A stretch of DNA of 64,000 bases. Source: Macrostomum lignano (Eukaryota). Made by a program: the position numbers and the translations under genes. A model generated the notes under the pieces. The model saw only the letters and a list, made by a program, of their open reading frames with translations, was not told where the DNA came from and did not search any database. The stretch lies in NCBI GenBank assembly GCA_002269645.1, contig NIVC01001075.1:248001-312000 (forward strand). Reading direction: 5' to 3'. Below are positions 1-58,121 of this stretch, one piece after another (the stretch's first letter is position 1; every line of letters starts with the position of its first letter).

Positions 1-2952
1 ACTGTGCAAAGTACTCGGACATCCATGCTGGCTAATCCATCGATTGAAAAGCGCCCTTGCCACCGTCCTTGCCTTCTGGTTGCGAAGCGGGTACGCGTCA
101 GGCCACTTCGTAAACGAATCTTGGACTGTCAGGAGATAAATGTTTCCAGCCTTACTCCGCGGTAGCGGCCCGACAATGTCCATCATGACGCAATCGAATG
201 GTGCTGCGAATGTCAACGGTTGCAGGGGTGCTCGGTTTCGCTTGCCCGGCTTTGACTTGCAGCAGGTGGCACAACCGCGAATATATTCTTCAATGGCACG
301 AGACAATCCTGGACGCCAGTAGCGCTGAAGCACTTTAAATTTTGTCTTCGCAAAGCCCATGTGGCCACCTCCCACTCCCTCGTGTAGGGTTTTCAAGATA
401 CGATCCAATGCCTTTCGTGGCAGCACCATTTGATACTCATCGCGCCTGTCTTTGTTTCTCACAAGGAGCACGTTCTCTTGCAGCACCAGGTCGTCTTTTC
501 GAGTCCAGACGGCTCTAGCCAGTGGACTCCAAGCTGTCTCGCTTTTATCTGGAACTGGGTTTGAGCCAAGCGCTTCCTTTACTGTTCTCAAATCGTCGTT
601 TTGATCCTGCTCGCTTGCCAGATTGCCGGCTGAGAATCGTTCAAATTCGACTGCATTTAGTCCTTCTGGATGCTGCGCACATGCCGGGCATGTCTCCGCT
701 CCGAAATGTCTCCGTACTGGCTTCCTCGACATTGCGTCCGCGTTGCCATGCGATCGACCTGGTCTGTGAACGATGCGGTACTGAAATGGAGCCAACTTCT
801 CCAACCAGCGAGCAACCTGTCCCTCGGCGTCACTGAAGTTTTTTAACCATTGCAGGCTGCTGTGGTCCGTTCGCAGACAGAACGCTTTTCCCAGCAGATA
901 GTATCTGAATTTCATGATGAAAGTCACAACCGCTAGTAGTTCTAAACGAGTCGTACAATAGTTGCGTTCGGCTTGATTTAGTGTCTTGGACCCATAGGCG
1001 ATCACTCGTTCTGCTCCATCTGGCTGGACTTGAGAAAGTACCGCTCCTATGCCCATCTTCGAACTGCCATCAGTATCGAGGATAAACTCTCCGGCATCCG
1101 GGGAGAAATCCGGATGAGCCATAACCTCTGAACTTGTCATTCGTTCCTTCAATGTTTCGAACGCCAGCTGCTGTTCCGTTTTCCATTCAAACTTTGCGTC
1201 TTTTGTTGTCAACCGAGTTAGAGGCGCTGCTATTGCGGCGAAATCTTTAATAAACTTTCTGTAATAGCCACACAGGCCCAAGAATGAATGCAGCTCCTTT
1301 GAGGATCGCGGTGTTGGCCAGTTCTTCACTTCTTGAACTTTCTCCTCATCGGTACTGATGCCAGCAGCCGACAGCGTGTGACCGAGAAATTTCACTTGCT
1401 TTTGCAAAAAGTGACACTTCTGGGGCTTCAGGCACAAATTTGCTTGCCGCAACTTGCTGAATATTTCCTCCAGTCTTCTCAGGTGTTCATCCACGTCGGT
1501 TGACCAAACCAGTAGATCGTCGATGTAGACGAGACAGGTTTTCCACATCTGCTTGTCCAAAACGGCTGCCATCAACCTGGTGAATGTTGCTGGGCTGTTC
1601 ACTAAGCCGAACGGCATAACCTTCCATCGAAATTGTCCGCGATGCGGCACTGCAAACGCCGTCTTGTCCTGATCCTGAGGTCTCACCCCTACTTGCCAAA
1701 ACCCGCTGTGAAGGTCCATTGTCGAGAAGATCTTGGCGCCGTGTACTGCCTCCAGCGCATCATCGACCCTCGGCATCGGCACTGCATCCTTGACGGTGAC
1801 CTCATTCAACTTCCGATAATCGACGCACATCCTCATTTCCCCTGATTTCTTCTTTACGCACACCAAAGGAAAGCACCATGGTGACTGTGCTTCTTCGATC
1901 TGCCCCTTTTCCAGCAACTCGTTGACTTGACGATCTACTTCTGGCTGTAAGTGGGGAGGCAGACGACGCGGTGGGATCTTGATTGGGCGCGCATTCTCGG
2001 TGTTAATTTCATGCTCCACCACGGTAGTTAACTTGCTTGAAGTCTGCTTGGTCGTGAACACATCGCCGTAACTCCGGACAAGGATTCTAAATTCTTCGTC
2101 TTCTTTCGTCGACAGTCCACAGTCGCCGTACGAGTTTGGTAGCAAGTCTGCTTCCGAAGGGCTGTCGCTGCCTTGGAACTTCGGCTCTTCCTGTGGATCG
2201 TCTCCTGACTCTACGGCTAAGAGCTTGATGGTGTTCAACGGTTCGGTGGATTCTAGGGGGCAGAACCACCCGAGCGTACAACCTTGGCGAATTCTGACTG
2301 GCTCCTCCGTGATATTGATGAGTCGAGTCGGCAGACGGCTGCCGCTATTTGGGATCACTAAGGCCTTAGCAAGCCAGCGGCCAGCTGCCAAATCGTTCGC
2401 CCCGAGATTCTCAGTTAGACCGACACACCCTCTGTTCCGTCGTCCTTTGCTCTCCAGCCTTGCTGACAGCACTGCTTGATGACCTGGCGGTATTGTGCTG
2501 GACCTTGTCGCCAAAATTCTGCAAACGATCGGGCGCTCAGCTTGCCATCGGAACGGGATTGCAGAGTCCTGCACTGAAAAGACAGCTCTCTTGTAGTCGA
2601 TGACGCAACTGTTGTCCCTGCAGAAGTCGGATCCCAATACCAGTTGGTACTTCACTCCGCTGACTACCAAGGCTGGAGTATCTATTACTTTATCAGCGAT
2701 TGACAGTCGCAACAGGACTGTCCTCTCGATTTCGATCGGGCTGCCGTTTGCTAAGCTAACGTAGCCTTCAGCACCGGCCAAATCTCTGACGCTCTGTTTC
2801 GGCATACTTTGGTAAGCTTCCCGTGAGATAATGGTGCAGGAAGCTCCCGAGTCCACTAGCGCGTTCACCCTCCGCCCTGCGATTGAGGCCGTAACATATA
2901 TCGACGCAGGATTGATTTGAATTGACTGAGGTGCGTTGACGGTGATTGGGCG
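1..2952 (-). CDS. pol: Pol polyprotein (protease, RT, RNase H, integrase), partial; 984 codons without a stop
   Basis: Manual translation: LVDSGAS (PR), MDLHSGFWQV, MPFGL, YIDD at 1516-1527 (RT), LDTDGS...TDH (RNase H), LHEGVGGGH...CATC (IN zinc finger), DIVGP...DSFTKWP (IN core). Probably missing from the ORF track because it runs off the window. Confidence 0.95.
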
Positions 2953-3819
2953 CTACGACTGTGCAAAACCGGCTAGTTGATGGTGAGGTGCAGTACCGGA
3001 CGCTGGGGGCTGATGAGGCACTGTACCGGACACTAGATGCTGATGAGACGCAGTACCGGACACTGGAGGCTGATGAGACGCAGTACCGGACACTGGATGC
3101 TGATGAGATACTGTACCGGACACTGGAGGCTGATGAGACGCAGTACCGGACACTGGATGCTGATGAGATACTGTACCGGACACTGGAGGCTGATGAGACG
3201 CAGTACCGGACACTGGAGGCTGATGAGACGCTGTACCGGACACTGGATGCTGATGAGGCGCAGTACCGGACACTGGATGCTGATGAGGCGCAGTACCGGA
3301 CACTGGATGCTGATGAGGTACTGTACCGAACACTGGATGCTGATGAGACGCAGTACCGGACACTGGAGGCTGATGAGACGCTGTACCGGACACTGGATGC
3401 TGATGAGGCGCAGTACCGGACACTGGATGCTGATGAGACGCAGTACCGGACACTGGAGGCTGATGAGACGCTGTACCGGACACTGGATGCTGATGAGGCG
3501 CAGTATCGGACACTGGATGCTGATGAGCCGCAGTACCGGACACTGGATGCTGATGAGGTACTGTACCGGACACTGGAGGCTGACGAGACGCAGTACCGGA
3601 CACTGGAGGCTGATGAAGCGCGGTACCGGACACTGGATGCTGATGAGGCGCAGTACCGGACACTGGATTCTGATGAGGCGCAGTACCGGACACTGGAGGC
3701 TGATGAGATGCGGTACCGGGCGTTTGATGATGATGAGATGAGATGACGGCTTGTTCGGAGGCTGACGAATTGCAGGGGCTCACTTGCCTCCAGCTGGTGG
3801 GCCCCTCTTGCCTTTTCCC
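2953..3819 (-). CDS. Putative trans-frame spacer ORF (His/Pro/Ser/Gln-rich 10-aa repeats), -1 frame of gag and same frame as pol, ending in TAG at 2953-2955
   Basis: Frame arithmetic; entered at G_GGA_AAA; the codon after TAG begins RPITVNAPQ...LVDSGAS. Confidence 0.55.
   Translation of the reverse strand, partial: GKRQEGPTSWRQVSPCNSSASEQAVISSHHHQTPGTASHQPPVSGTAPHQNPVSGTAPHQHPVSGTALHQPPVSGTASRQPPVSGTVPHQHPVSGTAAHQHPVSDTAPHQHPVSGTASHQPPVSGTASHQHPVSGTAPHQHPVSGTASHQPPVSGTASHQHPVFGTVPHQHPVSGTAPHQHPVSGTAPHQHPVSGTASHQPPVSGTASHQPPVSGTVSHQHPVSGTASHQPPVSGTVSHQHPVSGTASHQPPVSGTASHQHLVSGTVPHQPPASGTAPHHQLAGFAQS
2991..3745. repeat. 30-bp tandem array, about 25 units (CACTGGATGCTGATGAGGCGCAGTACCGGA)
   Basis: Period directly visible: two units per 60-nt line. 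Confidence 0.97.
3774..3819 (-). promoter_or_regulatory. Candidate -1 ribosomal frameshift signal: heptamer G_GGA_AAA (3819-3813), 6-nt spacer, hairpin AGGGGC...GCCCCT
   Basis: Fits X_XXY_YYZ in the gag frame; the stem spans the gag TGA. Confidence 0.7.
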
Positions 3820-4712
3820 GGCTTTGGGCACTGGAATGAGAGATGGCCTATCTCCCCGCAGTTGTAGCACTTGACACCGCTACGCTGCTTCGAGCTGGAC
3901 GGAGCCGCCTGCTTGGATTGTTGCTTGTCTTGAAGGCCGGGTTCGGGCGGCTCCTGCTGGCCCTGCTGCATCTGCTCCATCCGTCGGATCTTTTCTTCCA
4001 TTTCCTTTACTTTTTGACGCAGTTGGCGTAGCTCCTCGTCTTTGCCGGTGTCACCTGTCGACGTTTCGGTGGCAAAGGCATTCAGCCCAGCCCTGGGTCT
4101 GGCTTTGGACTGGGTCGAAGACGCCTTCTGGGCTGCTTCAAGTTGTCTTACTGTTCGAATGGCATCGGTGAGGTTGGCCGGCTGCTGCAGGTACAGTCTT
4201 TCTCGGACAGTGTCGGTTACTCGAACGCCTTTTAGAAATCTGTCTTTCGCCAGCTCTGTCCTGGTGTCGGCATCCGCGGTGGGGAAGGCATTGCGCACCA
4301 ACTCCAGCAGCTCGTCCCCGTAGGTCTCCACAGACTCCTTGTCTAGCTGATCTCGATTCGATAATTCAAAACGGTAGTCCTGGGCTGTTCTGTTCATGGT
4401 GAACCGCGCCAGTAGTGCATCCGTGAATTCCCCGTACTCGATGTCGTCTGCCAAGTCCAGCTTATCAACGGCAGCGTAGGCTGTTGTGAGGTCGAGTAGG
4501 CCGATCAGGTGCGGCCGCCTGGCTTCTTCTTCTATACCGACAGCCTCGCAGTACTCGTTGAAACTCTGCAGCCATAGGCTGAAATTCATCGTTGGTATGT
4601 ACTTGGGCGGCTTCGAGAGTCGTGGCGCTGCTCGGTCGGCGTTGGCTCTGAGGCGCGCAGCCAGCGCATCGATCAGTTGGTCCATAGCTTGATCACCCAT
4701 GGCCGAAGTCAC
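3780..4712 (-). CDS. gag: Gag (capsid-like region plus CCHC zinc knuckle), 310 aa
   Basis: CYNCGEIGHLSFQC knuckle; Gypsy-type capsid pattern (NFSLWLQSF...ESVETYGDEL...DRFLKGV); upstream of pol. Confidence 0.93.
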   Translation of the reverse strand: MTSAMGDQAMDQLIDALAARLRANADRAAPRLSKPPKYIPTMNFSLWLQSFNEYCEAVGIEEEARRPHLIGLLDLTTAYAAVDKLDLADDIEYGEFTDALLARFTMNRTAQDYRFELSNRDQLDKESVETYGDELLELVRNAFPTADADTRTELAKDRFLKGVRVTDTVRERLYLQQPANLTDAIRTVRQLEAAQKASSTQSKARPRAGLNAFATETSTGDTGKDEELRQLRQKVKEMEEKIRRMEQMQQGQQEPPEPGLQDKQQSKQAAPSSSKQRSGVKCYNCGEIGHLSFQCPKPGKGKRGPPAGGK

Positions 4713-4924
4713 TGAATACCGTTGCTACTCTTTACTCTGAGGTGGTGATAGCTATCGATCTCTGATAACCAATCAGTTGTCTGTCACCGTGATCAATGTC
4801 TTTTGCGGTAGGGCAATAGCCGCAAGCGATAAGCAACAGTCGTTTTAATAAGAAAAAACGCTCACAATATGACAGCAATTTTCATAGAAAGCAACTGAGC
4901 CGACTTTCAATCTTTGGGGACAGG

Positions 4925-4942
4925 GTCCCTGTTCGGGCGCCA
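4925..4942 (-). promoter_or_regulatory. Primer-binding site TGGCGCCCGAACAGGGAC (tRNA-Lys UUU type)
   Basis: 18-mer starting TGG, 3 nt from the LTR end ...TTACAACA. Confidence 0.88.
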
Positions 4943-4945
4943 ATT

Positions 4946-5814
4946 TGTTGTAACCCGGGTCGGCTTGGGTGCCCAGTCCCGAGTACAATATATATTATAT
5001 GTGATATAACAGGCGTTGTGACGCTCTGTCTGTACTTTTATGAATACGACGAGCAGGCGTGGCGACGCTCTGCGATAATAATTCGATCCCTCTGGTGTTG
5101 TGACACTCAGAGTTCACGCTGCGGCTCGAGGTGTGGTGACACTCTCGAGTGCTTCTATTCTCTATACCGTAGGGCGTACGCAATATATATGGTAAACGGT
5201 ACCGTACTACAGAAGCTATATGGTCTTCCGGCGTTATGACGCTCTGGCAAGAATTCGGCCTAGCAAGCTTCCCGGAAAGAAAGGACTCAAACAGCAGGCG
5301 GCTTACCAGTGGCCAGATGACTGTTCACCGTTTATTATTCGCAGGTCTCAAGCGCAGTTTCCGACTTCTTCTTAATTCTCCAAGACTCTTCTCAATTAGG
5401 CTATTGTGTTTCTTTTATCCAAGTAGCTAATGTTGCTGTTTCTTTTATCAGGTCTCGCGCTTGCACTCTCGGAGCACACCAAAACACAAAAAGCACGCAG
5501 GTGGTGGGCAAGAGCCAGAGTCGCACCATAAATAGCACCCAAACCCTGGGGCAGACGGCCCCACCGGCTAAGCTCACCAAAACAAACCACGCCGGCCCAG
5601 CCAATCAAAACCCCGCCTAAGGGGGGAGGGGCTGCACCCGCGCCAAAGCTGGCCCGGCCGCAGCCAACCAGCCCTAAGCACGGGGCAGGGGCACGGCTGG
5701 GGAGGGGCACGCGCAAAGCCCGGCCGGGGCCAGACCCTGCCACGCCCGCCAACCCCCCCAACCAGCCCCAAAGTGCAACGCGCACTGCCAACTGACAAGG
5801 GCGCATGCACTACA
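4946..5814 (-). repeat. Putative 5' LTR, about 870 bp
   Basis: Minus strand starts TGTAG and ends AACA beside the PBS; CCAAT/GC box near 5600-5618, TATTTAT near 5530, AATAAA near 5331. The outer boundary is unconfirmed because the second LTR is outside the window. Confidence 0.6.
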
Positions 5815-6032
5815 CTGTTAATTTCAAAAGGCCCTCAAAAAAATTGCTCCACCAATTGCAGACTAAAGGTGGCTGTCAGCCTTAAGTTCGCAAAGAGCTG
5901 ACGTCATGTAGCGTTTAAAAGTTCACGGCAACCTTGCCAGTTGACTCTCTGGCTTCTCTCAAAGCGTGTTTTCTCTTTGAGTTGCTTTCAAATTTCCAAA
6001 GTCGTTTATAAAAGAGAAGATTCTATCAAGGG

Positions 6033-6148
6033 TTGGTTTGTGTCAGAATTGGCGCCAATAAGTGGTTTGTGACAGCATTGGCGCCAACAAGTGGTTTGTG
6101 TCAGCATTGGCGCCAACAGTTGTTTGTGTCAGCATTGGCGCCAACAAG
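6033..6148. repeat. 29-bp tandem repeat, 4 copies (TGGTTTGTGTCAGCATTGGCGCCAACAAG)
   Basis: Direct inspection. Confidence 0.9.
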
Positions 6149-6639
6149 GCGCTATGCTAGAATGGACCAGACGAACCTCAGGAAAGTCAGCCATCAGAAA
6201 ACTTGAAGAAGGCATTCCAAACAGGAGCTACAGGGAAGCGCAGGTTTGCACGCAACCGTTGCTTCCAATTTCAAAGAGTTTCTTTTGACAAGAAATTGCT
6301 CCAATTACAAGTGACTGATGCGTTGGTTGCGTGAGTGCGGATTGCCTGTTTGCTTGGCCTGGCAGCGCGGCACGATAGCTGTGAGTTGGCTGGAATTTCG
6401 GACCAACATCTTAATTTTATTCTTTATTTTCGTCTCAGTGCCTCAGATTTCTCATTTCTCATAATTCATTAGGAGTTTCTGCGCGAAAAATGTTTTTATT
6501 GTTTAACGCATTTTAGCCTACTATTCAATAGTAGTATGGAAAATTGAAGATAGTCCATTTAAATGCATTCTTTAAATGGGTAAAAAGTTTCTGCTCTCTG
6601 ACACACTCAGCTACAGACTTAGGCTGCCGGTTCTGCCGA

Positions 6640-7170
6640 CTCAGAATCAGCTACCGAATGAGCTACCGACTTAACTGCAGACTCAGCTACAGACTCAGCT
6701 ACCGACTCAGCTATAAACTCAGCTAAAGACTGAGCTGCAGACTCAGCTACATAATCAGCTGCAGACTCAGATGCAGACTCAGCTTCCGACTCAGCTATAA
6801 ACTCAGCTAAAGACTGAGCTACAGACTCAGCTACAGACTCAGCTACATACTCAGCTACAAACTCAGCTACCGACTCAGCTATAAACTCAGCTAAAGACTG
6901 AACTGCAGACTCTGCTACAGACTCAGCTGCAGACTCAGCTACAGACTCAGCTACAGACTCAGCTAAAGATTCAGCTACCGACTCAGCTACAAACTCAGCT
7001 AAAGACTCAGCGATGGACTGAGCTGCAGACTCAGCTACAGACTTAAATTCAAACTCAGTTACAGACTCAGCTTCCAACATAGCCACATACTTTTTCACCG
7101 TCCGCTGGAGTCTCAGCAAACTCAGCTACAGACTCAGCTACAGACTCAGCTGCAGACTCAGCTACAGACT
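6640..7170. repeat. 12-bp minisatellite (GACTCAGCTACA / GACTCAGCTGCA)
   Basis: Direct inspection; produces the AESV ORF. Confidence 0.92.
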
Positions 7171-7448
7171 AGTATCCACTGAGAGCTAAGCAGATGACAG
7201 TAGTGAATATGATTTAAAAAACGAAAGTTATACTTTAAATATTGAATTAACAAAATCAGCCTTATTTAGATAGTGAACTTCTGTGCTTTAATTGAAAAAT
7301 ATATTTAATAAAATATACTCGTAAGTAGCTCTTAGTACACACAGAATTTTTTATAAATATTTGCCGTATAAAGTTATACCTGCCATCCAGATTTATGAAT
7401 AACTTCATTAGAGCTTCTCAAAAGTTTTACTGAATTCCATAATGATGT

Positions 7449-7556
7449 TTACAGCAGACACTCCTGAACATATTTGTGCTTCTTCTCGTCCCACGTCTGG
7501 AAGCAGCTCTTGCGGCTGGAATTACAGAATGTCTCACGGTGAGATGGGACTGCGGT

Positions 7557-7587
<31 letters not shown>

Positions 7588-7590
7588 TAG

Positions 7591-7635
<45 letters not shown>

Positions 7636-7638
7636 TAG

Positions 7639-7679
<41 letters not shown>

Positions 7680-7682
7680 TAG

Positions 7683-7731
<49 letters not shown>

Positions 7732-7734
7732 TAG

Positions 7735-7775
<41 letters not shown>

Positions 7776-7799
7776 TAGTGTCTTAGTGTCTGTCTGTCC

Positions 7800-7887
<88 letters not shown>

Positions 7888-7906
7888 TAGTGTCTGTCTG
7901 TCTTAG

Positions 7907-7951
<45 letters not shown>

Positions 7952-7979
7952 TAGTGTCTGTCTGTCCGTCTGTCTGTCC

Positions 7980-8029
<50 letters not shown>

Positions 8030-8032
8030 ATC

Positions 8033-8069
<37 letters not shown>

Positions 8070-8400
8070 TTGTATCTCTGTCTGTCTGTCTGTCTGTCTG
8101 TAAACACAAACGGCAATTTAATCTTACTTGAGCTGCCGGTTGAGCTCCTCATCCAGGTCCTGAGCAGACTCAGCTGCATCTGCTGTACAAAAAGTGTTGA
8201 GCAGTTGCTGAGTTACTTAAATCTTAAGTCATTTCAAATGCTCCGGTGATCGGATCGCTGAGTCAGCAAATTTTGACTTTACCCTCATCGCTGTCAAAAA
8301 GCTCAGCATCTTCAGCTTCATCTTGGTCCCGCAACGGGGCGGCCCGAGTAGCAGTGGAGGCCGCTAGGGCGAACAACACCAGCGCTAGCCAACACTTCAT
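7449..8400 (-). CDS. Small secreted peptide precursor, 79 aa, exons 8400-8283, 8182-8128, 7515-7449
   Basis: ATG at 8400; donors G|GTAAAG and AA|GTAAGA; acceptors TTTTTGTACAG and TAATTCCAG; phases 1 and 2 join in frame (118+55+67=240 nt). Product [79 protein letters not shown]. Confidence 0.82.
7558..8101. repeat. (TCTG)n microsatellite with TTAGTG interruptions, in intron 2 of the peptide gene
   Basis: Direct inspection. Confidence 0.97.
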
Positions 8401-8908
8401 GGTTAATTTAGAATATCACTTAAAAAGTATACAAAACAGAATGGTATGCTTTCTTCTTGGAAAGTTCGGTTGTCTTGTCTATCGAATTTATATAAGCTTC
8501 ATACTTGTAAGGTTCGCTCTTTGTCTGTCTGCTTCACGTGGCGACTGGCGCACAGAGAGGCTTTGGGGTTTGAGCTGAGAATGGCTGTCGATTGTGCTCG
8601 GCATAGCCTTGCTCACGTTTTTTTTCTGCGACACGTGATTTGAGGGGTTGAGACGGGGTCTATTGTGACCTTTGGATGCAGTTGTAAATTTTTTTATTAT
8701 AATTTTTTAACAAGAATAGCAGCACTCAGCATTGCTTGGACACTTTTTAGCCGCTAAATGTTGCAGGTTGCAGCCTCTCTATGACTCAACACAGCTCTGT
8801 GTGTGTAAAAGTTCTATTAGGTGGTCAGGCTGCAGGGTTGAGTTAATATTTCTAATTAAACTCACTTCTAGCAATTTGTTTAGTGCTTTCTTTAAGAGAA
8901 AAACAGTT

Positions 8909-9650
8909 TTCAGTCCCTATCTACAGGTGTTCAGTCTCTGTCTACAGGTGTTCAGTCTCTGTCTACAGGTGTTCAGTCCCTATCTACAGGTGTTCAGTCT
9001 CTGTCTACAGGTGTTCAGTCTCTGTCTACAGGTGTTCAGTCTCTGTCTACAGGTGTTCAGTCCCTATCTACAGGTGTTCAGTCTCTGTCTACAGGTGTTC
9101 AGTCTCTGTCTACAGGTGTTCAGTCCCTGTCTACAGGTGTTCAGTCCCTGTCTACAGTTGTTCAGTCCCTATCTACAGGTGTTCAGTCTCTGTCTACAGG
9201 TGTTCAGTCTCTGTCTACAGGTGTTCAGTCCCTATCTACAGGTGTTCAGTCTCTGTCTACAGGTGTTCAGTCTCTGTCTACAGGTGTTCAGTCCCTGTCT
9301 ACAGGTGTTCAGTCCCTGTCTACAGTTGTTCAGTCTCTGTCTACAGGGGTTCAGTCCCTGTCTACAGGTGTTCAGTCCCTGTCTACAGGTGTTCAGTCCC
9401 TGTCTACTGGTGTTCAGTCCCTATCTACAGGTTTTCATTTCCTGTCTACAGGTTTTGAGTCTCTATCTACAGGTGCTAAGTCTCTATCTGCAAGTGCTAA
9501 GTCTCTATCTACAGTTGCTAAGTCTATCTACAGGTGCTGAGTCTCCATCTACAGGTGCTGAGTCTCCATCTACAGGTGCTGAGTCTCCATCTACAGGTCC
9601 TGAGTCTACATCTACGGGTGCTGAGTCTCTTTCTACATTTTCTCCATTAG
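8909..9650 (+). repeat. 21-bp minisatellite (CTACAGGTGTTCAGTCTCTGT), degenerating rightwards
   Basis: Direct inspection. Confidence 0.95.
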
Positions 9651-10120: not shown

Positions 10121-11208
10121 CCTGTAGACAGGGACTGAACACCTGTAGACAGGGACTGAACACTTGTAGACAGAGACTGAACACTTGTAGACAGTGACTG
10201 AACACTTGTAGACAGGGACTGAACACTTGTAGACAGAGACTGAACACTTGTAGACAGAGACTGAACACCTGTAGACAGGGACTGAACACCTGTAGACAGA
10301 GACTGAACACCGGGAGACAGAGACTGAACACCTGTAGACAGAGACTGAACGCTGGGAGACAGAGACTGAACACTTGTAGACAGTGACTGAACACCTGTAG
10401 ACAGGGACTGAACACTTGTAGACAGAGACTGAACACTTGTAGACAGTGACTGGACACTTGTAGACAGAGACTGAACACTTGTAGACAGTGACTGAACACC
10501 TGTAGACAGGGACTGAACACTTGTAGACAGAGACTGAACACCTGTAGACAGGGACTGAACACCTGTAGACAGGGACTGAACACCTGTAGACAGGGACTGA
10601 ACACCTGTAGACAGAGACTGAACACCTGTAGACAGTGACTGAACACCTGTAGACAGGGACTGAACACTTGTAGACAGAGACTGAACACTTGTAGACAGAG
10701 ACTGAACACCTGTAGACAGGGACTGAACACCTGTAGACAGGGACTGAACACCTGTAGACAGGGACTGAACACCTGTAGACAGGGACTGAACACCTGTAGA
10801 CAGGGACTGAACACCTGTAGACAGAGACTGAACACCTGTAGACAGAGACTGAACACCTGTAGACGGAGACTGAACACCTGTAGACAGGGACTGAACACCT
10901 GTAGACAGAGACTGAACACCTGTAGACAGAGACTGAACACCGGGAGACAGAGACTGAACACCTGTAGACAGAGACTGACCTATAGACAGAGACTGAACAC
11001 CTGTAGACAGAGACTGAACACCGGGAGACGGAGACTGAACACCTGTAGACAGAGACTGAACACCGGGAGACAGAGACTGAACACCTGTAGACAGAGACTG
11101 AACACCTGTAGACAGAGACTGAACACCGGGAGACAGAGACTGAACACCTGTAGACAGAGACTGAACGCTGGGAGACAGAGACTGAACACCTGTGCGAGAC
11201 AGGGACTG
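10121..11208 (-). repeat. Same 21-bp minisatellite in inverted orientation (ACAGAGACTGAACACCTGTAG on +)
   Basis: Unit is the reverse complement of the 8.9-9.6 kb unit. Confidence 0.95.
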
Positions 11209-12511: not shown

Positions 12512-14567
12512 TCACCGACAGCCGCAATAATCCACTTCCATGTCGTCGAACGACTTCAGTACGACCTCGTTGTGGCTGCCCTGGTACAGGATCGTCTTGG
12601 GCCGCAGCCTGGCGGGCACGCAGGTTGGCGGGCTGGCCTGGCCCGGCCGGCTGCTGTGCAGCGTCATCTGCAGGATGGCGTGGTTCGTTGCGTTGAACAC
12701 GTCGCTCAGCGGGAACGGGCACTGCCCGGAGCAGGCGCCGGCATCGAAGCCCTGCGGCGCGATGATCCAACTGTCCCAGCCAATCTCGGCGAAGTCGACG
12801 TACAGCGGGCGACGCTGGCAGACCGCGGCCAGGTCTGAGGCCACGTGCGGCAGCTGCTGCCCTGAGGTGCCGCTGCTGTACCGGCGCCTCCTCCTGCCGC
12901 CGCCGCCGCCGCCGTCCCTGCGACGTCTCCTCTGGGCGGAGTGTCGAACTTCTCGACGCTGCCGACTCCGATGGTAAGTGACCAGCTGCGGCGGCTCAGC
13001 AACATCTCGCCGACGTCGAGAGTGAACCGACGTGGCCGGCGTCCAGGTGCCCTCGGCGGCCGGACTCGCGGTCGGACGGCCAGACGGACGGCGATTCGTC
13101 CACGATCGGCTCGGCGGCAGGATTCGAACTCGTGTCTGTCCAGCTGAATGGCGAGTTCGCTGGCTCCGGCTGGAAGCAGGCCGACACCGGCCGGCCGGTC
13201 GCAGAGGTGAGCGGACACCCGGTGAGCGAGGAGGCTGCGACCGCGTCTGTGCAGTTCGAGGCCTCTGCGATGGAGGCGGAGGTGTACAGCCGCCGGCTGC
13301 TCCGTGGCATCCAGCAGAGAAGACGCGTTGAAGTTAGCAAGATCTGGTCTAGGCGTTCCTGTTGCAAGGACGGATGGAAATTGGGATCACTTTTTTGTCT
13401 GCTTTTCGTAGTTCCAGAAAGTTGAAAAGAATTATCCAGTCAACTGACCTGCGGCGTGTGGTTGTGGACGCGAAAATGGATAACTCATGTCCAGCAACTT
13501 TTTCTCTGCGTTTATCCCGGAATCAAGATTCCAGCAGTCATCTCCACAGTGTCTCATGCGGAGGTCTGGACCCTGGCCACCCAGGCTGACCCGCCATCCA
13601 CCTACCCCAGCGACCGCCAGACAGGCACTTCAAATCATAGCATAACGGCACAGTCGGAAATACTTCCAGTTTTGTGTCAGCCATTAAGACCAAAATAATT
13701 CAAGTTGTTATTTTTGTCTCCGAGCTCATTAAGTAGGCTTTTTACTGGTCCCAAGTTTCTTTTGTTAAAATCGAAACACTCGTCCAGATTTTGATCTGAG
13801 GCTTGGATCTTTTTTGTGTCGGGAGGCACCTGCTTCACTAATTACACTGAACTTTCCATTTCGGAGTCAGTCCACGTGTGGCAACACTCTGCTTTGAAAT
13901 TCTGTTCTCATGGTAACGGATGGCAATCTGAGACCTGCGCTTATCGAGAAATCTAAATGTCAAAATAGATTCGTCAATAACTAGGTAAGAAAATTGGAGT
14001 AAATCTGACGCTAAGGACTACTTAACAACATCGTTTTGATAAAAATACATGTAGTCTTTGTCTTCTAGAGTCTTTGTATCATAAATGTTTCTAGCCAGGC
14101 CGTCATTTGACGGTTGCAAAGCTTACTTATGCCAATTTTCAAGGGCTACAGTTCCCGTACCCAGAGATCGGAATTGTTGGCGAGATGGCAAAATCTTGAG
14201 CGGCGAGGCCCACATAAACGAGCTTAATTGACCTCGCAGCTCAACCCGAGCGCTCACCAATAAGTCCGTGGCTCACAACGGAGCTCACAGCGCCGGGAAT
14301 CTCCGGCACGCCATCCTCCGGCCCCAGCCAGATATCCGGTTGGTCTCGCATCAGCCGGTACATCTGGCGCATATGGTCGCTTGTTGATCGCCATGTCGAT
14401 GGCGGCGACGCTGGCGACAGTGTCGGGCGGGCGGCAGCCACGGCCAGCAGTTCGGTAGCGGAGGAGTTCGGCAGCTCGGCTGAGGTAGCCAGCAGCAGCA
14501 GCGACAGAAGCTGCAGCAGCAGCAGCGGCTGTGGCAGCTGAGGCAGCGATACGCGAGTTCGCTGCAT
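12512..14567 (-). CDS. BMP-class TGF-beta ligand precursor; exon 1 14567-14258, exon 2 13358-12512 with a frame discontinuity near 13080-13000
   Basis: Leu-rich signal peptide; prodomain motifs ANFNASSL...VHLRLH and PQLVTY; poly-Arg furin sites; mature domain CQRRPLYVDFAEIGWDSWIIAP...C..C...NATNHAILQ...CVP...DDMEVDYCGCR; donor TTG|GTGAGC, acceptor CAACAG|G. Confidence 0.9.
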
Positions 14568-16621
14568 CTGCGGGGTCCGGTTATAAATTCTCGGTAGACA
14601 AAGTTTCTCTCTAAGCCACTTGCTTGTTTGTGCGTCTGTCTGTCTGCCTTCCTGTCTGTCTGTCTGTCTGGCTTCTCTTGTACGCCTTTATTAGCGAGTC
14701 TGTCTGTCGACTCGAGATAATGCTTTAATTCTCGACCAAAAAAGCACAAGACTACCGCTGGTCTCCAACCAAAACGTAAGGCGGGCTCCGAACTGGCGCC
14801 GGGGCTTTAATTTTTTTGGCGACGACGAGATGGCTGGGGCTGCGAGGGGGAGGCCGCCCTTCCTATGGCGTGACGGCCCCAGGTGGGGGCACGCAGAAGG
14901 GAGAGAAGGGACCGACTTTTGGCACTTGGCCATTGGCTTGAAGCTTTGCGGGAACGGAGTGGGTGGGGCAAGAGGGGAGAAAGAAGCGAATGCCGATTTC
15001 GGCTGCCCACGCTCCTTCGCCTCCCCCTCTCTATCACTCTGAGACATTCTTGCATTACAATGCAATAATGGCCTCCCTGACAGCTCGGAATGGCTCACTT
15101 ATGGTTCAGGCGAGCGGTCACTTCTGACGGCAAAACTTTCCAACGTTATGTCTCTAATTGTTCTAGACGTGACACGTTTACTCAATATTCGAAGCCTCCA
15201 AAAACCTCCTGACTCGCTTCATCACTTTTCGCTTAAGGGTGTATCCGACGATGTCGCGCCCAATTCTGTTTGGCTCGACCCCTCATTGAACAGAGCCCGC
15301 CCGCGGCCTCTCTAAGTGGCCAATGCAGGCTACAATGGTTCGCTGGCCTGAAAGTTATATTGCAGCTGAACAAACGCACTGCACTGGTTTACCGACCCCA
15401 ACGCCTGCAACATCTCTGCAGACGTCTCTGGTCTTTGTTGACTTTTTCTCTGCCATATATCTCTGGAATATATAGATACCACAATGTTGTAACAGCTTGC
15501 GTATAGAACTATAACTTCAGGAAACAAATTCTACACTTGATAGCAAGCTTAAGTTTTACAGCTTTACATATGTTGAGGCTAATTTTAACTGCAAGATAAC
15601 ATTGTCTTATTTATGCTAGGTATTTGACGGCTTGTAATTATAAGAGTCATTTATCGGTCTTCGCGAGTTGTCTTCGACAATCTTTTCGATGAAGGTTTTG
15701 GGATTCGTTAAGCAATTGGCTGTTGCATTCAAAAAGGTGCATAGGGAGGTACAGCTGAAACATGTAGCCATGGAGAGGGTATCACAGACAGGGCTAATGG
15801 CCAATTGTGATGGCAAAATGCCAATCTGCTGTCAGGTGAAGAATTGCAACTGTGTGACAAAACAAACACAAATTATCAGTGAATAAGCCAGCCTGCCAGA
15901 CTGTCGCTATTCCTCCATTTTCAACAAGTTAAATGCGGTTAGACGAACGACAAAAAGGTAGAGCGTGCGGTTGTCTCCCTGCATGGTAATTCATTTCTTT
16001 AGTGCAGTCGTCTCTTTGGGATACTGGCGGGCGTATAGGGATTTTTTATTAACGGTCGGAAGTTTTACTGCGAACAGAATTGTCTCTTAATTGATAATAA
16101 CGTTGCCAACGAGCAACAAATCGAGAGCCTGTTGTTCAAAGTTGTCTTTCATAAATGGATTTGTGACAGCCCCCCATCGGCCCCCCTACTTGACTTCGCA
16201 ACTGGCTCGTGTAAATCATGGCAAGCTGTGCTGACACAAAATCCTGAATTTAACGTTTAGAACTTTTAGTCCTCTCTGCACTACTCCTTTTAGCAGTAGT
16301 ATGTTCGAAATTTGGATAACCAAACAGGGCGATAGTGATCACGGTATGATCACGTCTGGTTGCCAATTACCCGAGCCTGCCAAGCAGTGCGCTTGCACTC
16401 CTCGCATTATTCTGGGCTGCTAGCTAGCTCGTACTTATTGAATCAATTGAATGTCGTAGCATTGTCTTGTTATATTTAATTATATGCCTTGTGAGAAGAC
16501 AAGAAAGACGTTATTCTATATTTTAAACTATCGTAGCTCGTATATTAATAAGATCTTTCGGTTTTCAATGAGTCACATGAGGCCTTTTGGCTTTCTGTTT
16601 GCGAGGCAATAACACCGTGCT

Positions 16622-16833
16622 GGGGGGGCCGTAGCCCAGCGCAGCGGTCTAGCGCAGGCTCTGGTGTGCCAGCGACCCAGGCTCGATTCCAAGTGCAGTC
16701 ACATTAATTTGGGGCTGAATTGGAATCTCGGCTTGGCTCTGCTCGTGCAATTAACGGCCTTGAGAGCCAACCCCCCCAAGGCGCAGTGAAGTGTACATGC
16801 CTAACGATAAAATAAAGTTAGGGCCGCTGTACA
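16622..16833 (+). mobile_element. tRNA-derived SINE-like element
   Basis: A-box-like TAGCCCAGCGCAGCGG, B-box-like GGCTCGATTCC, A-rich segment near the 3' end; second copy at 39275-39390. Confidence 0.7.
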
Positions 16834-19599
16834 CTCCTGTGTGAGTGTGTGCCTGCGTACATATCCGCGCACTTGTGTGCCTGCTCAGGGGAGTCGGCGG
16901 AATGGGCAGTAATGCCTCTCGTCGGTTGTGTGCCTATGTCGCTTAAAGTGCGCCAGGGCACACAACCCCCCTGCCTCTAATAAAAAACACCGTGCATTGA
17001 TTTTTGGACCCTCGCGGGCGTGAATCCAACGTTTTAAGTTAATTTTCCCGAACACTGAATCGAATCCAGTGTTGAATCCAGTGTCCATCAAGAGTATTTG
17101 CCATTCACCTCCATCTGGTTGATCGTCTTAAGATAAGAACATTCAGATATAGGAGGTAGACAATATTTGAATATTGAGAATTACTGATGAGAAAATGCGC
17201 GAGAGAAAAAGGGGAATCGTTGACTGAGGATCCTAATTATTTTGGGATTTTTGTCAGTATCTGATGACGATTCTTATACTCGTAGTCCGTAGTTCAATAA
17301 TATTTATTTGCGACAAAAACAACTTTTCAAAATGCGTAACTTACCAAACTGTTGCCTAACGTGAAGAGTAGCATGTGACCAACAAATATTTTTGTAGAGG
17401 CAAGGATTAGCCGATCGTCGGTCCTGGTTACCAAGGTGGAGTTTTTATACACACTCTTGGGCACCGCCCACACTGCTGTCCTGATGGATTTCTCTTGACT
17501 TGACAGGCAATGAGCGGATGAGGGATTAGCTTGATCAATCTATGAGAAAAGCAAAGCGATCAAGGCTGAGGGGTGCTGGTGGCGTAGAAGCAGTTTAATC
17601 TCAGTAGAGCCAAGAGTGACGCTTAGCCGAGCGGTTCTTTCCAAATATGTCGCGCTCCTTTGGTCAAGAGATCCTCGCCCATGCAGAGGAGTGGCCACTT
17701 ATATGCCCTCGCAGCCGGACAAGAAGTCACGGCGAGAAATAGTAACAGCGCCAAGTGGCGGGCGGTCGACACCTTTGCGGTTGCCGAGGCTGGGCGAGGC
17801 GGAGGAGGCCGGGAGGATGCGCAGAAAAAAGCAAAATAATCAACCGATGCTCTACACCAAAGCCAGCGCCTCCGACAGATAGAGGAACAAAAAAATTAGT
17901 TTAAAGAAGAAGGCAGGACGCGCCCAATTATCCCGGATGGGGAGGCGGCTCTGGAGAGCGAGAGAGGAAGGGGAAAACCAAGGGGAGCTGAGGAATTTAG
18001 GTAGGAACCGCTGGAATAACGGCAGGAGGGGTCGGGAGACGAGCTGCATTGGCTGTGGGGTCCGAGCCGTGGTGGGATGGGGTTTGGAATCGAAGATCAA
18101 GGGCATCGATGCATCAACTGGGACGCCACAAGCGGCGCGTCTTGGCGAGGTCCCCATCGCAAATATCCCACTCTCCCATACAGGCGATCGTTTTCAGCCG
18201 AGCAGAAAGCGAAAGAGTGAGAGTGAGAGAGAGAAAGAGAGAGAGAGAAAGCAAATGTTAGCACAAGTCGTGTAAGTGGCAAGGGGGCGTGCACTGGAGT
18301 GTTTCGCCTTGTTAACACACGTTTTTTCGTATCATCTCTCCCTTCGCTCACTTCATCCTTTTCCTTTCCATAACCGTCTCTTTCAACTTACTTTGGCTTA
18401 GGGTGCTGGCAGAATCAGGAAAAACTTTCACCGCGCATTCTATAGGCGATAGTTTTCTCTTCTGTCCAGCACAAAGGAAATGACCGGAGCCCTTGTTGAT
18501 TGCAGGCGGGAGAGCCCGCGGCGGACCGTGACTGGAATCGGGGGCCGTTTTTCTGCCCAACTGCCCCCCTCTCCTCCTCCTCGCGGCATTTCTTGGGGCA
18601 ACCCGCCAGACAGACTGACGGCAGGTTTGCGCAGCGCGAGCGAACCGGAGAAGGGAAACGCAGCAGAGAGGCTAAGATGAGAGAAAATTCGAGACTTGTT
18701 CGGGGCACGGGACTGGCCTGATGCGTGCGGCCCAGATGCAACCGGCCAGCATGATCCGCGGGACTGATAACGGAGCCAATTATTTTTCTGGGCACAACAT
18801 TGAAGCAGGCGCCTGCAGTAAAAGGCAAACAGTTTGCTTTGCAGTTTACGTCAGCTAATTTTTCACTTTTGGTATAAATCACAGAGTGCTAGTTGAGAGC
18901 AGCTCCGTTCGTACAAGCTGTAGGATTGTTAAAATTTGCACGTCCAAAATTTCTACATTCCAAAACAGTTTTCAGTCTCAACAAAGTCAAAATTTGAAGG
19001 ATAAACTGGCCGGTACTTTTTGACTGCAAACTTTGATCAACTTTGGTTGGATTTTTGTCGTAAAATCCGACACCAGCAGAGCATTGTAAAACACGGGCAG
19101 ACAGAAAATTAAACCTAACACATCTTTCCAGGAGAGTGTAGGAAGCGACGGGTAGCCGCGCAGAATGTCGGGCAAAGAACTGCCGACAAGTTTTTCCCTG
19201 ATTTCTTCTTGCATTTTAATTTAGAACACGAGCTATCATATTGTTATGGTCGCACAACCGGTTCAAGTCTGCAAGACCCTTACTTGGCCTTCATTTTCCG
19301 CCCGATGGGGGTGCAACACCTTTATTAAATGGTTTCCTCTCATTTTCCTAGTCGAGAACATCCAACTAGCGAAACAATCGAGGCAAATACAGACACTTTG
19401 CTGCTCTTTGAAAATGCGGTAACTTTAGCCTAATGGCGATCAGTGATAATCTAAGTCACTGATCTAATCTACCAAAGTACGCGCCCTTTTGCTGCGGCTG
19501 CTAGATGCCACTCATGCCAAGAAACAAAACAGAAGCTCGACGAATGATAGGGGCTCCACTTCAGCCACCTCTTGGCATCTACACATGCACATACAAACC

Positions 19600-20125
19600 T
19601 ACCAAGAGGGGCGTCCACCGAGAGACAGTGGCATCCAAAAAGAGACAGTGGTGTTCACCAAGAGACAGTGGCGTCAACCAAGAGACAGTGGCGTCCACAG
19701 AGATAGTGGCGTCCACCAAGAAACAGTGGTGTCCACGAAGAGACAGTGGCGTCTACGAAGAGACAGTGACGTCAACCAAGAGACAGTGGCGTCAACCAAG
19801 AGACAGTGGCGTCAACCAAGAGACAGTTGCGTCCACAAAGAGACAGTGGCGTCAACCAAGAGACAGTGGCGTCCACAAAGAGACAGTGGCGTCCACAAAG
19901 AGACAAGTGCGTCAACCAACTGACATTTGCGTCTACCAAGAGACGGGTGACGTCCACCAAGAGACAGTGGCGTCAACCATGAGACAGTAGCGTCCACAAA
20001 GAGACAGTGGCGTTCACCAAAAGACCACTGGGGTTCACCAAGAGACAGTGACGTCAACCAAGAGACAGTGGCGTCAACCAAGAGACAGTGACGTCAACCA
20101 AGAGACAGTCTTGCGTCCACCAAAG
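19600..20125. repeat. About 21-bp minisatellite (ACCAAGAGACAGTGGCGTCAA)
   Basis: Direct inspection. Confidence 0.93.
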
Positions 20126-21300
20126 AGACAGTTAATTGGTGCCCACCCAGACATCAAGGCGCTCTTAAAGGAATGCGTCTCCTAAATAATAAATTCTATC
20201 GTACAAGACTGGTGCCAATAAAAGTACACGCATCTTTTTCCCTTAAATTGGTATTCAAGCAAGCAGATCTAAATGTTAGTTGATTGAACTATTGTATGAA
20301 CTAGTACATGCAGTAGTTAGTATTTTTAGCATAAAAACGTACACTTAACACTTGTATATGATGCTGCACAAAAATCTGCATATTTTAATGTTTATATTGC
20401 TCACAATATCGACTTTGACATGTATGTATGTGCTATAAAAATGTATGCATGTGATAGCTTGTTTAGTTATAAAAAGTAAATGATTCTTATTCCATGCATT
20501 CTTATTTAAATGGATTAGGTTTTGTCTTTTGTTCTGAATGCGACAGAAACTAACATACATAGGAAATTCCACATATTGCCCATCATGCATTATAATTCAG
20601 TTTTTCTACTGGTAGTAGCGAGAGAAGCGTATTGCGGAATGGAGAAATACATGTAATACATGACTTATAGTGAGGATCATGTCGAATATGTTGCTCTTTG
20701 AATCTGCAATTACGCCGCTAGATTGCGCAAACATGCATAAAATAAATAAAAGCATTGCAACCGGGAATCTAGACGTGATCCTATTTTGTTTACTTCATGC
20801 TTAGACAGTGGGGCACAACTCTTGGGAAGTGTGGAAAGACTCGACATTTTCATGTATTTTAGAAAAAATCTAACGGCCGAATTTCCAGTTAAAACACGCG
20901 AAATTTTAAAATTAAACAAAAAACAAAAAGTTGCAGAATTTTTTAATGAAAAGAGTTTATATTAGAATATTTTTCAAAATAAAATTAAGCGAGAATTCTT
21001 GTTTTATACAGAAAATTACTTTTAAAGTATGGTTGTACTCAAATGTAGCTTGTTTTTTAAAAAAAGCCTTAGCTAGAGTTGAATTTGCACTTTGCAGGTT
21101 CGTGTCGTGTTTTTTACATTTTCCATGACAAGATTGTATTTTTACGAGAGTGACGCTACTTACTCTTGTCCTATCTCCTGACGCAGACGGTGGCGATTAA
21201 GTGATAACTTTATCAATCGGTACACACTACTTGACTTCAGTTTTTGTGAAATTTTTTACATCAGAGGAACTCAATTTATATTTTGTGAGTATAAAGCACA

Positions 21301-37011: not shown

Positions 37012-37089
37012 GCTCTGTTTTGCAATACATTGAAGGGCGCGATGTGGTTAAAAGAAATGGACTTAATTATTAACAGTTTCTTCTTTACT

Positions 37090-38875
37090 TTGGACCAATG
37101 TAGCTTTGGACCAAGCTTTGGACCAATGTAGCTTTGGACCAATGTAGCTTTGGACCAATGTAGCTTTGGGCCAATGTAGCTTTGGACCAATGTAGCTTTG
37201 GGCCAATGTAGCTTTGGACCAATGTAGCTTTGGACCAAAGTAGCTTTGGACCAATGTAACTTTGGACCAATGTAGCTTTGGACCAATGTAGCTTTGGACC
37301 AATCTAGCTCTGGACCAATGTAACTTTGGACCAATGTAGCTTTGGAGCTTTGGACCAATGTAGCTTTGGACCAAAGTAGCTTTGGACCAATGTAACTTTG
37401 GACCAATGTAGCTTTGGACCAAGCTTTGGACCAATGTAGCTTTGGACCAATGTAGCTTTGGACCAAAGTAGCTTTGGACCAATGTAACTTTGGACAAAGT
37501 AGCTTTGGACCAATGTAGCTTTGGACCAATGTAGCTTTGGACCAAAGTAGCTTTGGACCAATGTAGCTTTGGACCAATGTAGCTTTGGACCAATGTAACT
37601 TTGGACCAATGTAGCTTTGGACCAAGCTTTGGACCAATGTAGCTTTGGACCAATGTAGCTTTGGACCAATGTAGCTTTGGACCAAAGTAGCTTTGGACCA
37701 ATGTAACTTTGGACCAATGTAGCTTTGGACCAAGCTTTGGACCAATGTAGCTTTGGACCAATGTAACTTTGGACCAATGTAGCTTTGGACCAAGCTTTGG
37801 ACCAATGTAGCTTTGGACCAAAGTAGCTTTGGACCAATGTAACTTTGGACAAAGTAGCTTTGGACCAATGTAGCTTTGGACCAATGTAGCTTTGGACCAA
37901 AGTAGCTTTGGACCAATGTAGCTTTGGACCAATGTAGCTTTGGACCAATGTAACTTTGGACCAATGTAGCTTTGGACCAAGCTTTGGACCAATGTAGCTT
38001 TGGACCAATGTAGCTTTGGACCAATGTAGCTTTGGACCAAAGTAGCTTTGGACCAATGTAACTTTGGACCAATGTAGCTTTGGACCAAGCTTTGGACCAA
38101 TGTAGCTTTGGACCAATGTAGCTTTGGACCAAAGTAGCTTTGGACCAATGTAGCTTTGGACCAAAGTAGCTTTGGACCAATGTAACTTTGGACCAATGTA
38201 GCTTTGGACCAATGTAACTTTGGACCTATGTAGCTTTGGACCAATGTAGCTTTGGACCAAAGTAGCTTTGGACCAATGTAACTTTGGACCAATGTAGCTT
38301 TGGACCAATGTAGCTTTGGACCAATGTAGCTCTGGACCAATGTAACTTTGGACCAATGTAGCTTTGGACCAATGTAACTTTGGACCAATGTAGCTTTGGA
38401 GCTTTGGACCAATGTAGCTTTGGACCAAAGTAGCTTTGGACCAATGTAACTTTGGACCAATGTAGCTTTGGACCAAGCTTTGGACCAATGTAGCTTTGGA
38501 CCAATGTAGCTTTGGACCAATGTAGCTTTGGACCAAAGTAGCTTTGGACCAATGTAACTTTGGACCAAAGTAGCTTTGGACCAATGTAACTTTGGACCAA
38601 TGTAGCTTTGGACCAAAGTAGCTTTGGACCAATGTAACTTTGGACCAATGTAGCTTTGGACCAATGTAGCTTTGGACCAAAGTAGCTTTGGACCAATGTA
38701 ACTTTGGACCAAAGTAGCTTTGGACCAATGTAGCTTTGGACCAATGTAGCTTTGGACCAATGTAGCTTTGGACCAATGTAGCTTTGGACCAATGTAACTT
38801 TGGACCAATGTAGCTTTGGACCAATGTAGCTTTGGACCAATGTAACTTTGGACCAATGTAGCTTTGGACCAATGT
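37090..38875. repeat. 16-bp minisatellite (GGACCAATGTAGCTTT), about 110 units
   Basis: 16-aa (48-nt) translation period in all three minus frames. Confidence 0.97.
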
Positions 38876-39274
38876 AGGAGGCTTGGTAACCAGACAGTGT
38901 CCAACTGGAAACCCACCAACCAGAAAGTAGCCATAATGTACTTTTGTTGTTTTTGTTCCAAATCTACGTCCATGTGCTCGTATTTTTCGTGATGTTTTTG
39001 TTGTAAAAAGTGATTGGTTTTTTAAAACTTCAATATGATATTCATGATCAGTAGACCTTTAACGCGTTTTGTGTCCAGTGTAAGCAAGTATTTCGCTAGC
39101 AAACACCTTAAAGCCAGTCAGTTTTGTAAATATTAATTAAAGCGTCCTCTCCCGAGCCACTGTTCTTTTAAATAGTTGGCGATAATTCTACTTATTTTTT
39201 GTTATCTTTGCGTGATTGCATTATTAGTTTTTTTAAATCTATGCAGTCGGGTTTAAAGATTTAAACAAAAATAT

Positions 39275-50212: not shown

Positions 50213-58121
<7,909 letters not shown>

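Follow-up and report, generated by a model that had tools for sequence, protein, structure and literature searches.

The question raised by one short locus in the genome of the flatworm Macrostomum lignano is whether a gene whose exons are each too short to register as an open reading frame (ORF) encodes a secreted precursor with a small cysteine-bearing module at its C-terminal end. The locus lies on the minus strand of a 64,000-nt stretch of contig NIVC01001075.1, which is referred to here as the window and whose positions are used for all coordinates below. The reading favoured in the present work, to which a probability of about 0.45 is assigned for the whole chain of events in broad outline, is that the gene encodes a secreted precursor in which the C-terminal Cys module is the functional end. 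That a real, expressed gene is present is considered highly probable, and that its product is translated and secreted is considered probable; the formation of an intramolecular disulfide in the C-terminal tail is an even bet, and cleavage at a dibasic RK pair, which would free the tail as a 19-residue peptide, is proposed only tentatively, at appreciably less than even odds.

The minus strand of positions 7300-8600 was read and exons were joined by a script. The joining of 8400-8283, 8182-8128 and 7515-7449 produces an in-frame coding sequence (CDS) of 240 nt which specifies 79 amino acids (aa), and these can be partitioned into a signal peptide of 20 residues, a spacer of 38, the two residues of the RK pair and a tail of 19. 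The coding part of exon 1 (8283..8400, 118 nt) opens with the ATG at 8400-8398, which stands in a reasonable context and is preceded by an in-frame TGA 18 nt upstream; it contains codons 1-20 of the signal peptide (8400-8341) and the beginning of the acidic spacer, the remainder of which is encoded by exon 2 (8128..8182, 55 nt). The coding part of exon 3 (7449..7515, 67 nt) opens with the final base of an N codon and comprises the RK codons (7514-7509), the codons of the 19-residue tail (7508-7452) and the stop codon TAA (7451-7449). Intron 1 (8183..8282) is 100 nt long and runs from GTAAAG to TACAG, and intron 2 (7516..8127), 612 nt long and running from GTAAGA to TTCCAG, is essentially one (GACA)n microsatellite (7557-8101) with interspersed CACTAA units. 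The shortness of the exons hides this multi-exon gene from an ORF track, as had been pointed out in an initial annotation of the window, and the gene itself appears to be genuine.

Evidence for the exon layout is provided by a second locus, L001, on contig NIVC01000420.1 of the M. lignano Mlig_3_7 assembly. The protein annotated at this locus, P0002, is GenBank PAA83417.1 (BOX15_Mlig026256g1), and it was the only one of three closely related database proteins for which a look-up of contigs by exact protein returned a locus, the other two, P0001 and P0123, being without a record. When L001 is spliced at the junctions equivalent to those of the window, P0002 is obtained exactly. The GenBank annotation was built from RNA-seq alone, by combining StringTie/TACO assemblies with a genome-mapped de novo transcriptome and calling ORFs with TransDecoder (PMC5730564). 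Because the L001 junctions reproduce P0002 and the annotation is transcript-derived, the exon layout has transcript support by proxy, and the three exons that the initial annotation had proposed are upheld by both the script splicing and this reproduction; the division of the product given there is correct as arithmetic. Synteny between L001 and the window extends over at least 17 kb, where the sequences are 91-97% identical and where both contain the TGF-beta ligand gene upstream, a pair of satellite arrays and the repeats downstream. On this evidence the window and L001 represent recent duplicates, or haplotypes, of a partly duplicated genome, 180 Mb of which is found in blocks of at least 95% identity (PMC5730564). 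Searches with tblastn detected no second copy of the gene in the window and no additional copies in L001, and an Rfam scan of the whole window produced no matches.

The gene is thus not new to the databases: it is already public in four records, which represent three or four near-identical copies and in which it is uncharacterised and misnamed. The third of the proteins introduced above, P0123 (UniRef100_A0A1I8JI37, UniProt A0A1I8JI37), is 92 aa long, and its residues 1-78 are identical to the window product in the shorter of the two spliced forms described below. Its extra tail of 14 residues is recreated exactly by the insertion of one G before the TAA of the window (7449-7455), and P0123 is therefore the window's own gene copy with a 1-nt indel. 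The extra G is probably an indel error in an older assembly, or else it marks an allele with a frameshift. The window copy, P0001 and P0002 all have an uninterrupted ORF, and P0123 departs from them by the extra G at the stop only.

The junctions given in the initial annotation, 8283/8182 and 8128/7515, are valid GT-AG junctions, but the annotated copies use 8283/8179 in place of the first. The 3' end of intron 1 in the window reads TTTTTGTACAG, so that the acceptor is a tandem CAG-CAG of the NAGNAG type (TACAG-CAG-AT, minus strand 8180-8185); the corresponding acceptor of L001 is CACTGCAG followed by AT, with the distal AG only. Use of the distal AG would move the end of intron 1 to 8180, reduce exon 2 to 52 nt and remove one Ala, and P0001, P0002 and P0123 all fit this form of 78 aa (...DSDEDAAES...). 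The discrepancy between the 78 aa of the annotated copies and the 79 aa first predicted is accounted for by the tandem acceptor, because the annotated copies use the AG that lies 3 nt downstream. A potential one-alanine isoform (79 versus 78 aa) would be specific to the window copy.

The anatomy of the predicted product is that of a small secreted precursor. At the N-terminus the n, h and c regions of a signal sequence can be recognised: K2, a hydrophobic core of 11 residues, whose Kyte-Doolittle hydropathy averages 2.65, and a c-region of small, polar residues. Several positions obey the -3/-1 rule for cleavage, among them TRA/AP after residue 20, and the hydrophobic stretch is not long enough to anchor the protein in a membrane. 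Judged by these heuristics, the N-terminus fits a cleavable secretory signal peptide, in agreement with the initial annotation, whose strongly acidic pro-region is also confirmed: the spacer contains 15 D/E in its 38 residues (37 residues in the 78-aa form) and carries a charge of -13. Its predicted local distance difference test score (pLDDT) is low in both of the AlphaFold models described below, and it is probably disordered. A single RK pair, which is kept in all copies, precedes the tail. The tail can be read from the sequence as 19 residues with exactly two Cys, as first described, in a C-x14-C spacing, and the protein stops 2 residues after the second of them; a third Cys of the product is located inside the signal peptide and is lost when the signal peptide is removed. 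The tail has an isoelectric point (pI) of 6.5, a charge of -0.5 and a grand average of hydropathy (GRAVY) of -0.87, and it is unchanged in P0001 and P0123, with one change, T to R, in P0002.

We infer that the tail is cleaved, cyclised and bioactive, by the following sequence of events. The protein would enter the endoplasmic reticulum and lose its signal peptide after approximately Ala20. The two remaining Cys would then be expected to pair, because the secreted part has exactly two Cys and the secretory pathway is oxidising, and their pairing would close a 16-membered ring (C-x14-C) over a beta-hairpin. A prohormone convertase of the PC2 type would cut after RK, a carboxypeptidase would trim the basic residues, and the 19-mer so released would have a monoisotopic mass of 2382.11 Da in its oxidised form and would not be amidated, since no Gly follows it. 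The peptide would act extracellularly, in signalling or in a secretory-gland role.

The fold of the tail was examined with two AlphaFold2 runs, the first of which used a two-sequence alignment with P0001 as the target and the second of which used P0002 alone (T64R). The first run predicts strands at 60-66 and 71-77, with block pLDDT values of 91 and 84, which are joined by a four-residue turn, E-K-K-H, and which place C61/C76, W65/Y72, T64/V73 and D66/K71 in cross-strand pairs. The second run predicts a helix at 61-77 with a pLDDT of approximately 78. The final 18 residues have a pLDDT of at least 77 in both runs. Because the run on P0002 gives a helix, the hairpin is not robust, and a beta-hairpin fold of the tail can be described as plausible on the strength of the first model; the hairpin-like loop of the initial annotation is accordingly reproduced by one prediction and contradicted by the other. 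A Foldseek comparison of the model with the PDB returned generic hairpins only, at E>2, and hydrophobic moments do not discriminate between helix and hairpin, the helical moment of the tail being reached by 32% of shuffled sequences. The predicted hairpin turn (residues 67-70, E-K-K-H) contains a second dibasic pair, KK, and it is pure speculation that a cut there would leave two chains joined by the disulfide.

The layout was compared with those of characterised systems. The planarian prohormone genes (spp/npp) of Collins et al. 2010 were selected by the presence of a signal sequence, a basic site flanking the predicted peptide and a length of less than 200 aa (PMC2953531), and the product described here, which shows no supported similarity to any other annotated family, agrees with them in length (78/79 aa) and, judged heuristically, in its signal sequence, the RK pair before the tail being a candidate for the basic site. 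Many of the planarian genes are lineage-restricted, as the window gene is, but they were cDNA-verified, many of them also by mass spectrometry and neuronal in situ hybridisation (PMC2953531), and the window gene differs from them in having a single basic site and in that no sequence similarity to it was found outside M. lignano. The urotensin II of Aplysia (apUII), for which the disulfide and the cleavages have been shown by mass spectrometry, is a cyclic peptide that ends its prohormone, and it shares with the window product a signal peptide, a long spacer from which no product is evident, a basic site, a short terminal peptide with two Cys and the absence of an amidation signal (PMC3493602). 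The urotensin II ring is C-x4-C (C99-C104; PMC3493602), as against C-x14-C in the window product. In addition, precursors of the somatostatin/urotensin II type have a KR or RR site, while the window product has RK and lacks an FWKY/FWKT core in register, such as CFWKYC or FWKT within C-x10-C; F, W, K and Y do occur in this order in its ring, but they are spread across 12 residues and do not form a contiguous core. The rings of allatostatin-C, melanin-concentrating hormone (MCH) and somatostatin have 6-10 intervening residues. The window product is not a member of the somatostatin, urotensin II, allatostatin-C or MCH families: its ring is of another size, their core motifs are missing and no homology to them is detectable.

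The tail can also be compared with single-disulfide hairpins of the arenicin type. Arenicin, a lugworm beta-hairpin with a single disulfide that is cut from the C-terminus of its precursor, resembles the tail as modelled in the first AlphaFold run in its register, in its length of approximately 20 residues, in the location of the disulfide near the ends of the hairpin and in its C-terminal position. Peptides of this type are strongly cationic and hydrophobic, whereas the tail is near neutral and hydrophilic, and its hairpin was not reproduced in the second prediction.

The search for relatives was extended to two large protein collections. The word-indexed search, run at E<=10 against 5.8 billion proteins, returned two relatives only, at 96% and 92% identity, both from M. 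lignano, and an exhaustive phmmer search of 1.84 billion cluster representatives, in which approximately 45 bits were needed and weak relatives of a 78-aa query would be missed, returned the query alone. At the level of sequence, the gene is an orphan of M. lignano. The search for paralogs and orthologs that the initial annotation had called for thus leads to M. lignano copies only and to no match with a characterised family, and the undescribed family suggested there survives to the extent that no known family matches; the gene itself is already in the databases, and its relatives are the duplicates of one species. Since no relative outside that species has been found, what might be called a family currently consists of recent duplicates in one polyploid genome.

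One partial similarity deserves separate treatment. Residues 50-76 of the product, which are encoded by exons 2-3, match positions 7-32 of the 66 positions of the Pfam domain DBP10CT (PF08147) with E-values of 0.001-0.005, at a score of 17.6-19.5 bits which lies under the curated Pfam cut-off of 27 and with one third of the domain covered. The alignment with residues 829-846 of yeast Dbp10 is ungapped and includes W-D-x-K-K-x-K-Y-V, the corresponding E-value in the PDB being 0.9, and none of 10 composition-matched shuffles reached an E-value below 0.03 against DBP10CT. DBP10CT is the C-terminal domain of the nucleolar helicase Dbp10/DDX54, whose biology is unrelated to that of a product of the secretory type. 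The match is nominally unusual but is not established; it offers no clue to function and, at most, a hint of how the sequence originated.

A more specific version of the favoured reading can be built from these elements, in which the 19-mer is a processed cyclic beta-hairpin that founds a Macrostomum-specific signalling family, whether as a neuropeptide, a pheromone or a mating-related peptide. Such a family would be marked by its unusually large 16-membered ring, by the lack of relatives in all other animals, by processing at RK and possibly by a recent origin, perhaps from a DDX54/Dbp10-like fragment. In this full form the proposal is considered unlikely.

Several observations weigh against the proposal that the product is a secreted precursor with a functional C-terminal Cys module. 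Many neuropeptide precursors, though not all, have an amidation signal or repeated copies of the peptide, and the product has neither. RK is the least used of the dibasic convertase sites; the product contains only one such weak site, and the upstream Arg at P6 is replaced by Pro in the paralogs. In the helix predicted by the second AlphaFold2 run, the two Cys are too distant for an intrachain bond. No orthologue outside the species was found, and the tail is accordingly not deeply conserved. Identity between the copies is 91-97% with the introns included, and the ratio of non-synonymous to synonymous differences (pN/pS) that can be computed from them comes from 9 differences only. Finally, the gene ID, the UniProt ID and the peptide strings are all absent from the full text and supplements of the M. 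lignano papers that were searched for expression or function, and this search found no direct read, peptide or expression-site evidence for the window copy.

The alternatives to a processed or cyclised tail must be evaluated against the same body of evidence. The strongest of them, which is possible but is regarded as somewhat unlikely, is that RK stays uncut and that the product is a secreted, unprocessed polyanionic protein of 58/59 residues, a component of gland secretion, mucus or seminal fluid, whose tail is an amphipathic helix with intermolecular Cys bonds, e.g. in an antiparallel disulfide-linked dimer. The poor quality of RK as a convertase site and the helix obtained for P0002 alone both agree with such a protein, as does the fast-evolving, species-restricted character of the gene, which reproductive secreted proteins often display. 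Short gland transcripts with signal peptides and no homologues are, moreover, common in M. lignano: among prostate-limited proteins 38 of 65 have signal peptides, and 31 of 76 transcripts have no BLAST hit (PMC5977470). The AlphaFold run with the higher confidence nevertheless yields a hairpin in which the Cys are apposed, as a helix the tail has a hydrophobic moment that is ordinary among its shuffles, and the peptide strings are absent from the supplements of the seminal-fluid screen, a weak argument in view of the little sequence that these supplements contain. It is improbable that the locus is transcribed but that its short ORF is untranslated or functionless, as would be the case for a young or de novo ORF or for a non-coding RNA that contains a 79-codon frame. 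The ORF is indeed very short, no homologue has been found outside one species, and one database copy (P0123) changes frame at the stop. The CDS is also no better conserved than the rest of the locus, since 9 of its 237 nt differ between the window and L001 (3.8%), a divergence similar to that of intron 1 and the flanks (~3-4%). The conservation between copies was consequently dropped as coding evidence, introns being as conserved as exons, and, given copies that are 91-97% identical throughout, it says little about constraint. What does mildly favour a coding function, in copies too young to permit a strong test, is the pattern of the differences: they comprise 5 non-synonymous and 4 synonymous changes (pN/pS = 0.34), those in the signal peptide are conservative (L/V, V/M, A/T), RK and both tail Cys are retained, and the CDS is free of indels, although the 3' flank and the microsatellite contain them, the repeat of intron 2 differing in length between the window and L001. 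A functionless ORF is further opposed by the maintenance of the frame across three exons with both phases kept, by the well-formed signal peptide at the N-terminus and by a pLDDT in the final 18 residues that a random peptide would not usually reach.

The remaining alternatives are tied to the names under which the gene has been deposited. In UniRef, P0001 and P0002 are called 'UCR_hinge domain-containing protein', while the near-identical P0123 is called 'U22-Lycotoxin-Lsp1e_1'; that near-identical proteins carry two unrelated names suggests automatic naming, and the names are presumably machine predictions. The second name would suit a toxin-like or antimicrobial prepropeptide in which the acidic propiece neutralises a mature peptide active on membranes or ion channels, and the combination of a signal, an acidic propiece and a small C-terminal Cys peptide is common in toxins and antimicrobial peptides, with arenicin as an antimicrobial example of the single-disulfide hairpin. 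This explanation is nonetheless very improbable. The tail is neither cationic nor amphipathic, its near-neutral charge also arguing against the antimicrobial role that the initial annotation had listed among the possibilities; a knottin would need more than its two Cys; neither protein search returned a toxin, from spiders or otherwise; and the name U22-Lycotoxin-Lsp1e_1 is absent from the literature searched. An identity as a lycotoxin or other toxin, unlike in Cys number and charge to knottins and cationic lytic peptides, was rejected on these grounds. The first name would make the product a paralogue, divergent or truncated, of UQCRH/QCR6, the hinge protein of complex III, which it resembles superficially in being small and in having an acidic stretch before Cys. 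With the window product, P0001 and P0002 as queries, hmmscan at E<=10 produced no match to PF02320, and phmmer found no hinge chain in the PDB at E<=10, despite the many complex III structures deposited there; when 12 genuine hinge proteins were aligned and compared with the product by hhalign, the probability was 0.2% over 4 columns, and the BLASTP E-value was 13. In the vertebrate hinge alignment (A3), 5 Cys and a ELFDFLHARDHCVAH segment are invariant; the window product has 2 tail Cys and nothing that corresponds to this segment. The second helix of UQCRH/QCR6, which carries Cys partners, is likewise missing, and the hydrophobic N-terminal signal is of the secretory type, as opposed to mitochondrial targeting. 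The hinge identity was ruled out by the Pfam, PDB, hhalign and BLASTP results taken together, and it is considered refuted at sequence level, with a probability close to nil.

The interpretation as a secreted precursor with a C-terminal Cys module has consequences that depend on how much of it holds. Should the tail prove to be processed and cyclic, the few peptide signals catalogued in flatworms would be joined by a ligand restricted to one lineage, whose function could be tested quickly, since M. lignano is a model with transgenesis and RNA interference. As it stands, the gene is one of many uncharacterised orphan secreted mini-proteins and would not surprise a specialist. The public names, UCR_hinge domain and U22-lycotoxin, are unsupported and mutually contradictory, and they should not be propagated. 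The locus also illustrates that secreted genes with short exons escape ORF-based scans and are recovered by transcript-guided annotation.

Candidate transcription signals flank the gene on the same strand. A candidate TATA box, TATATAAA, is located at 8487..8494, approximately 90 nt upstream of the ATG, and is identical in L001. At the 3' end, two ATTAAA hexamers (7287..7309), candidate poly(A) signals, lie 140-160 nt past the stop and are kept in L001.

Repeats enclose the gene on both sides. Arrays of a 21-nt unit occupy 8909-9637 and 10121-11193, with approximately 35 and 51 copies and 91-92% matches; the two arrays are mutual reverse complements and form a large inverted satellite with a spacer of approximately 480 bp. 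The satellite begins approximately 500 bp before the ATG, and L001 has the same arrangement. The ORFs of 311 aa and 286 aa that are found in these arrays are repeat artefacts. A tandem array at 6642-7170, with a periodicity of 12/24/84 nt and a unit of the ACTCAGCTACAG type, lies approximately 280 bp downstream of the stop and is again present in L001; an ORF of 166 aa (6619-7119) falls within it.

The upstream neighbour, at approximately 12512-17400 on the minus strand, is a ligand gene of the TGF-beta/BMP type whose last exon (12512-12844) encodes a cystine-knot domain ending in ...CGCR and whose counterpart in L001 carries PF00019. On the other side, a minus-strand ORF at 3780-4712 encodes retrotransposon gag and CCHC zinc-knuckle domains and marks a nearby retroelement. 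Large exons elsewhere in the window belong to a nucleoporin FG-repeat protein (32754-33920, plus strand), a kinase of the PI4KB type with a PIK accessory domain (37063-38973, minus strand) and an RH1-domain protein of the RILP/JIP-like kind (57390-58121, minus strand). Two AT-rich blocks, 20001-28000 and 58001-60000, have a GC content of 0.30-0.38, compared with a background of 0.44-0.56.

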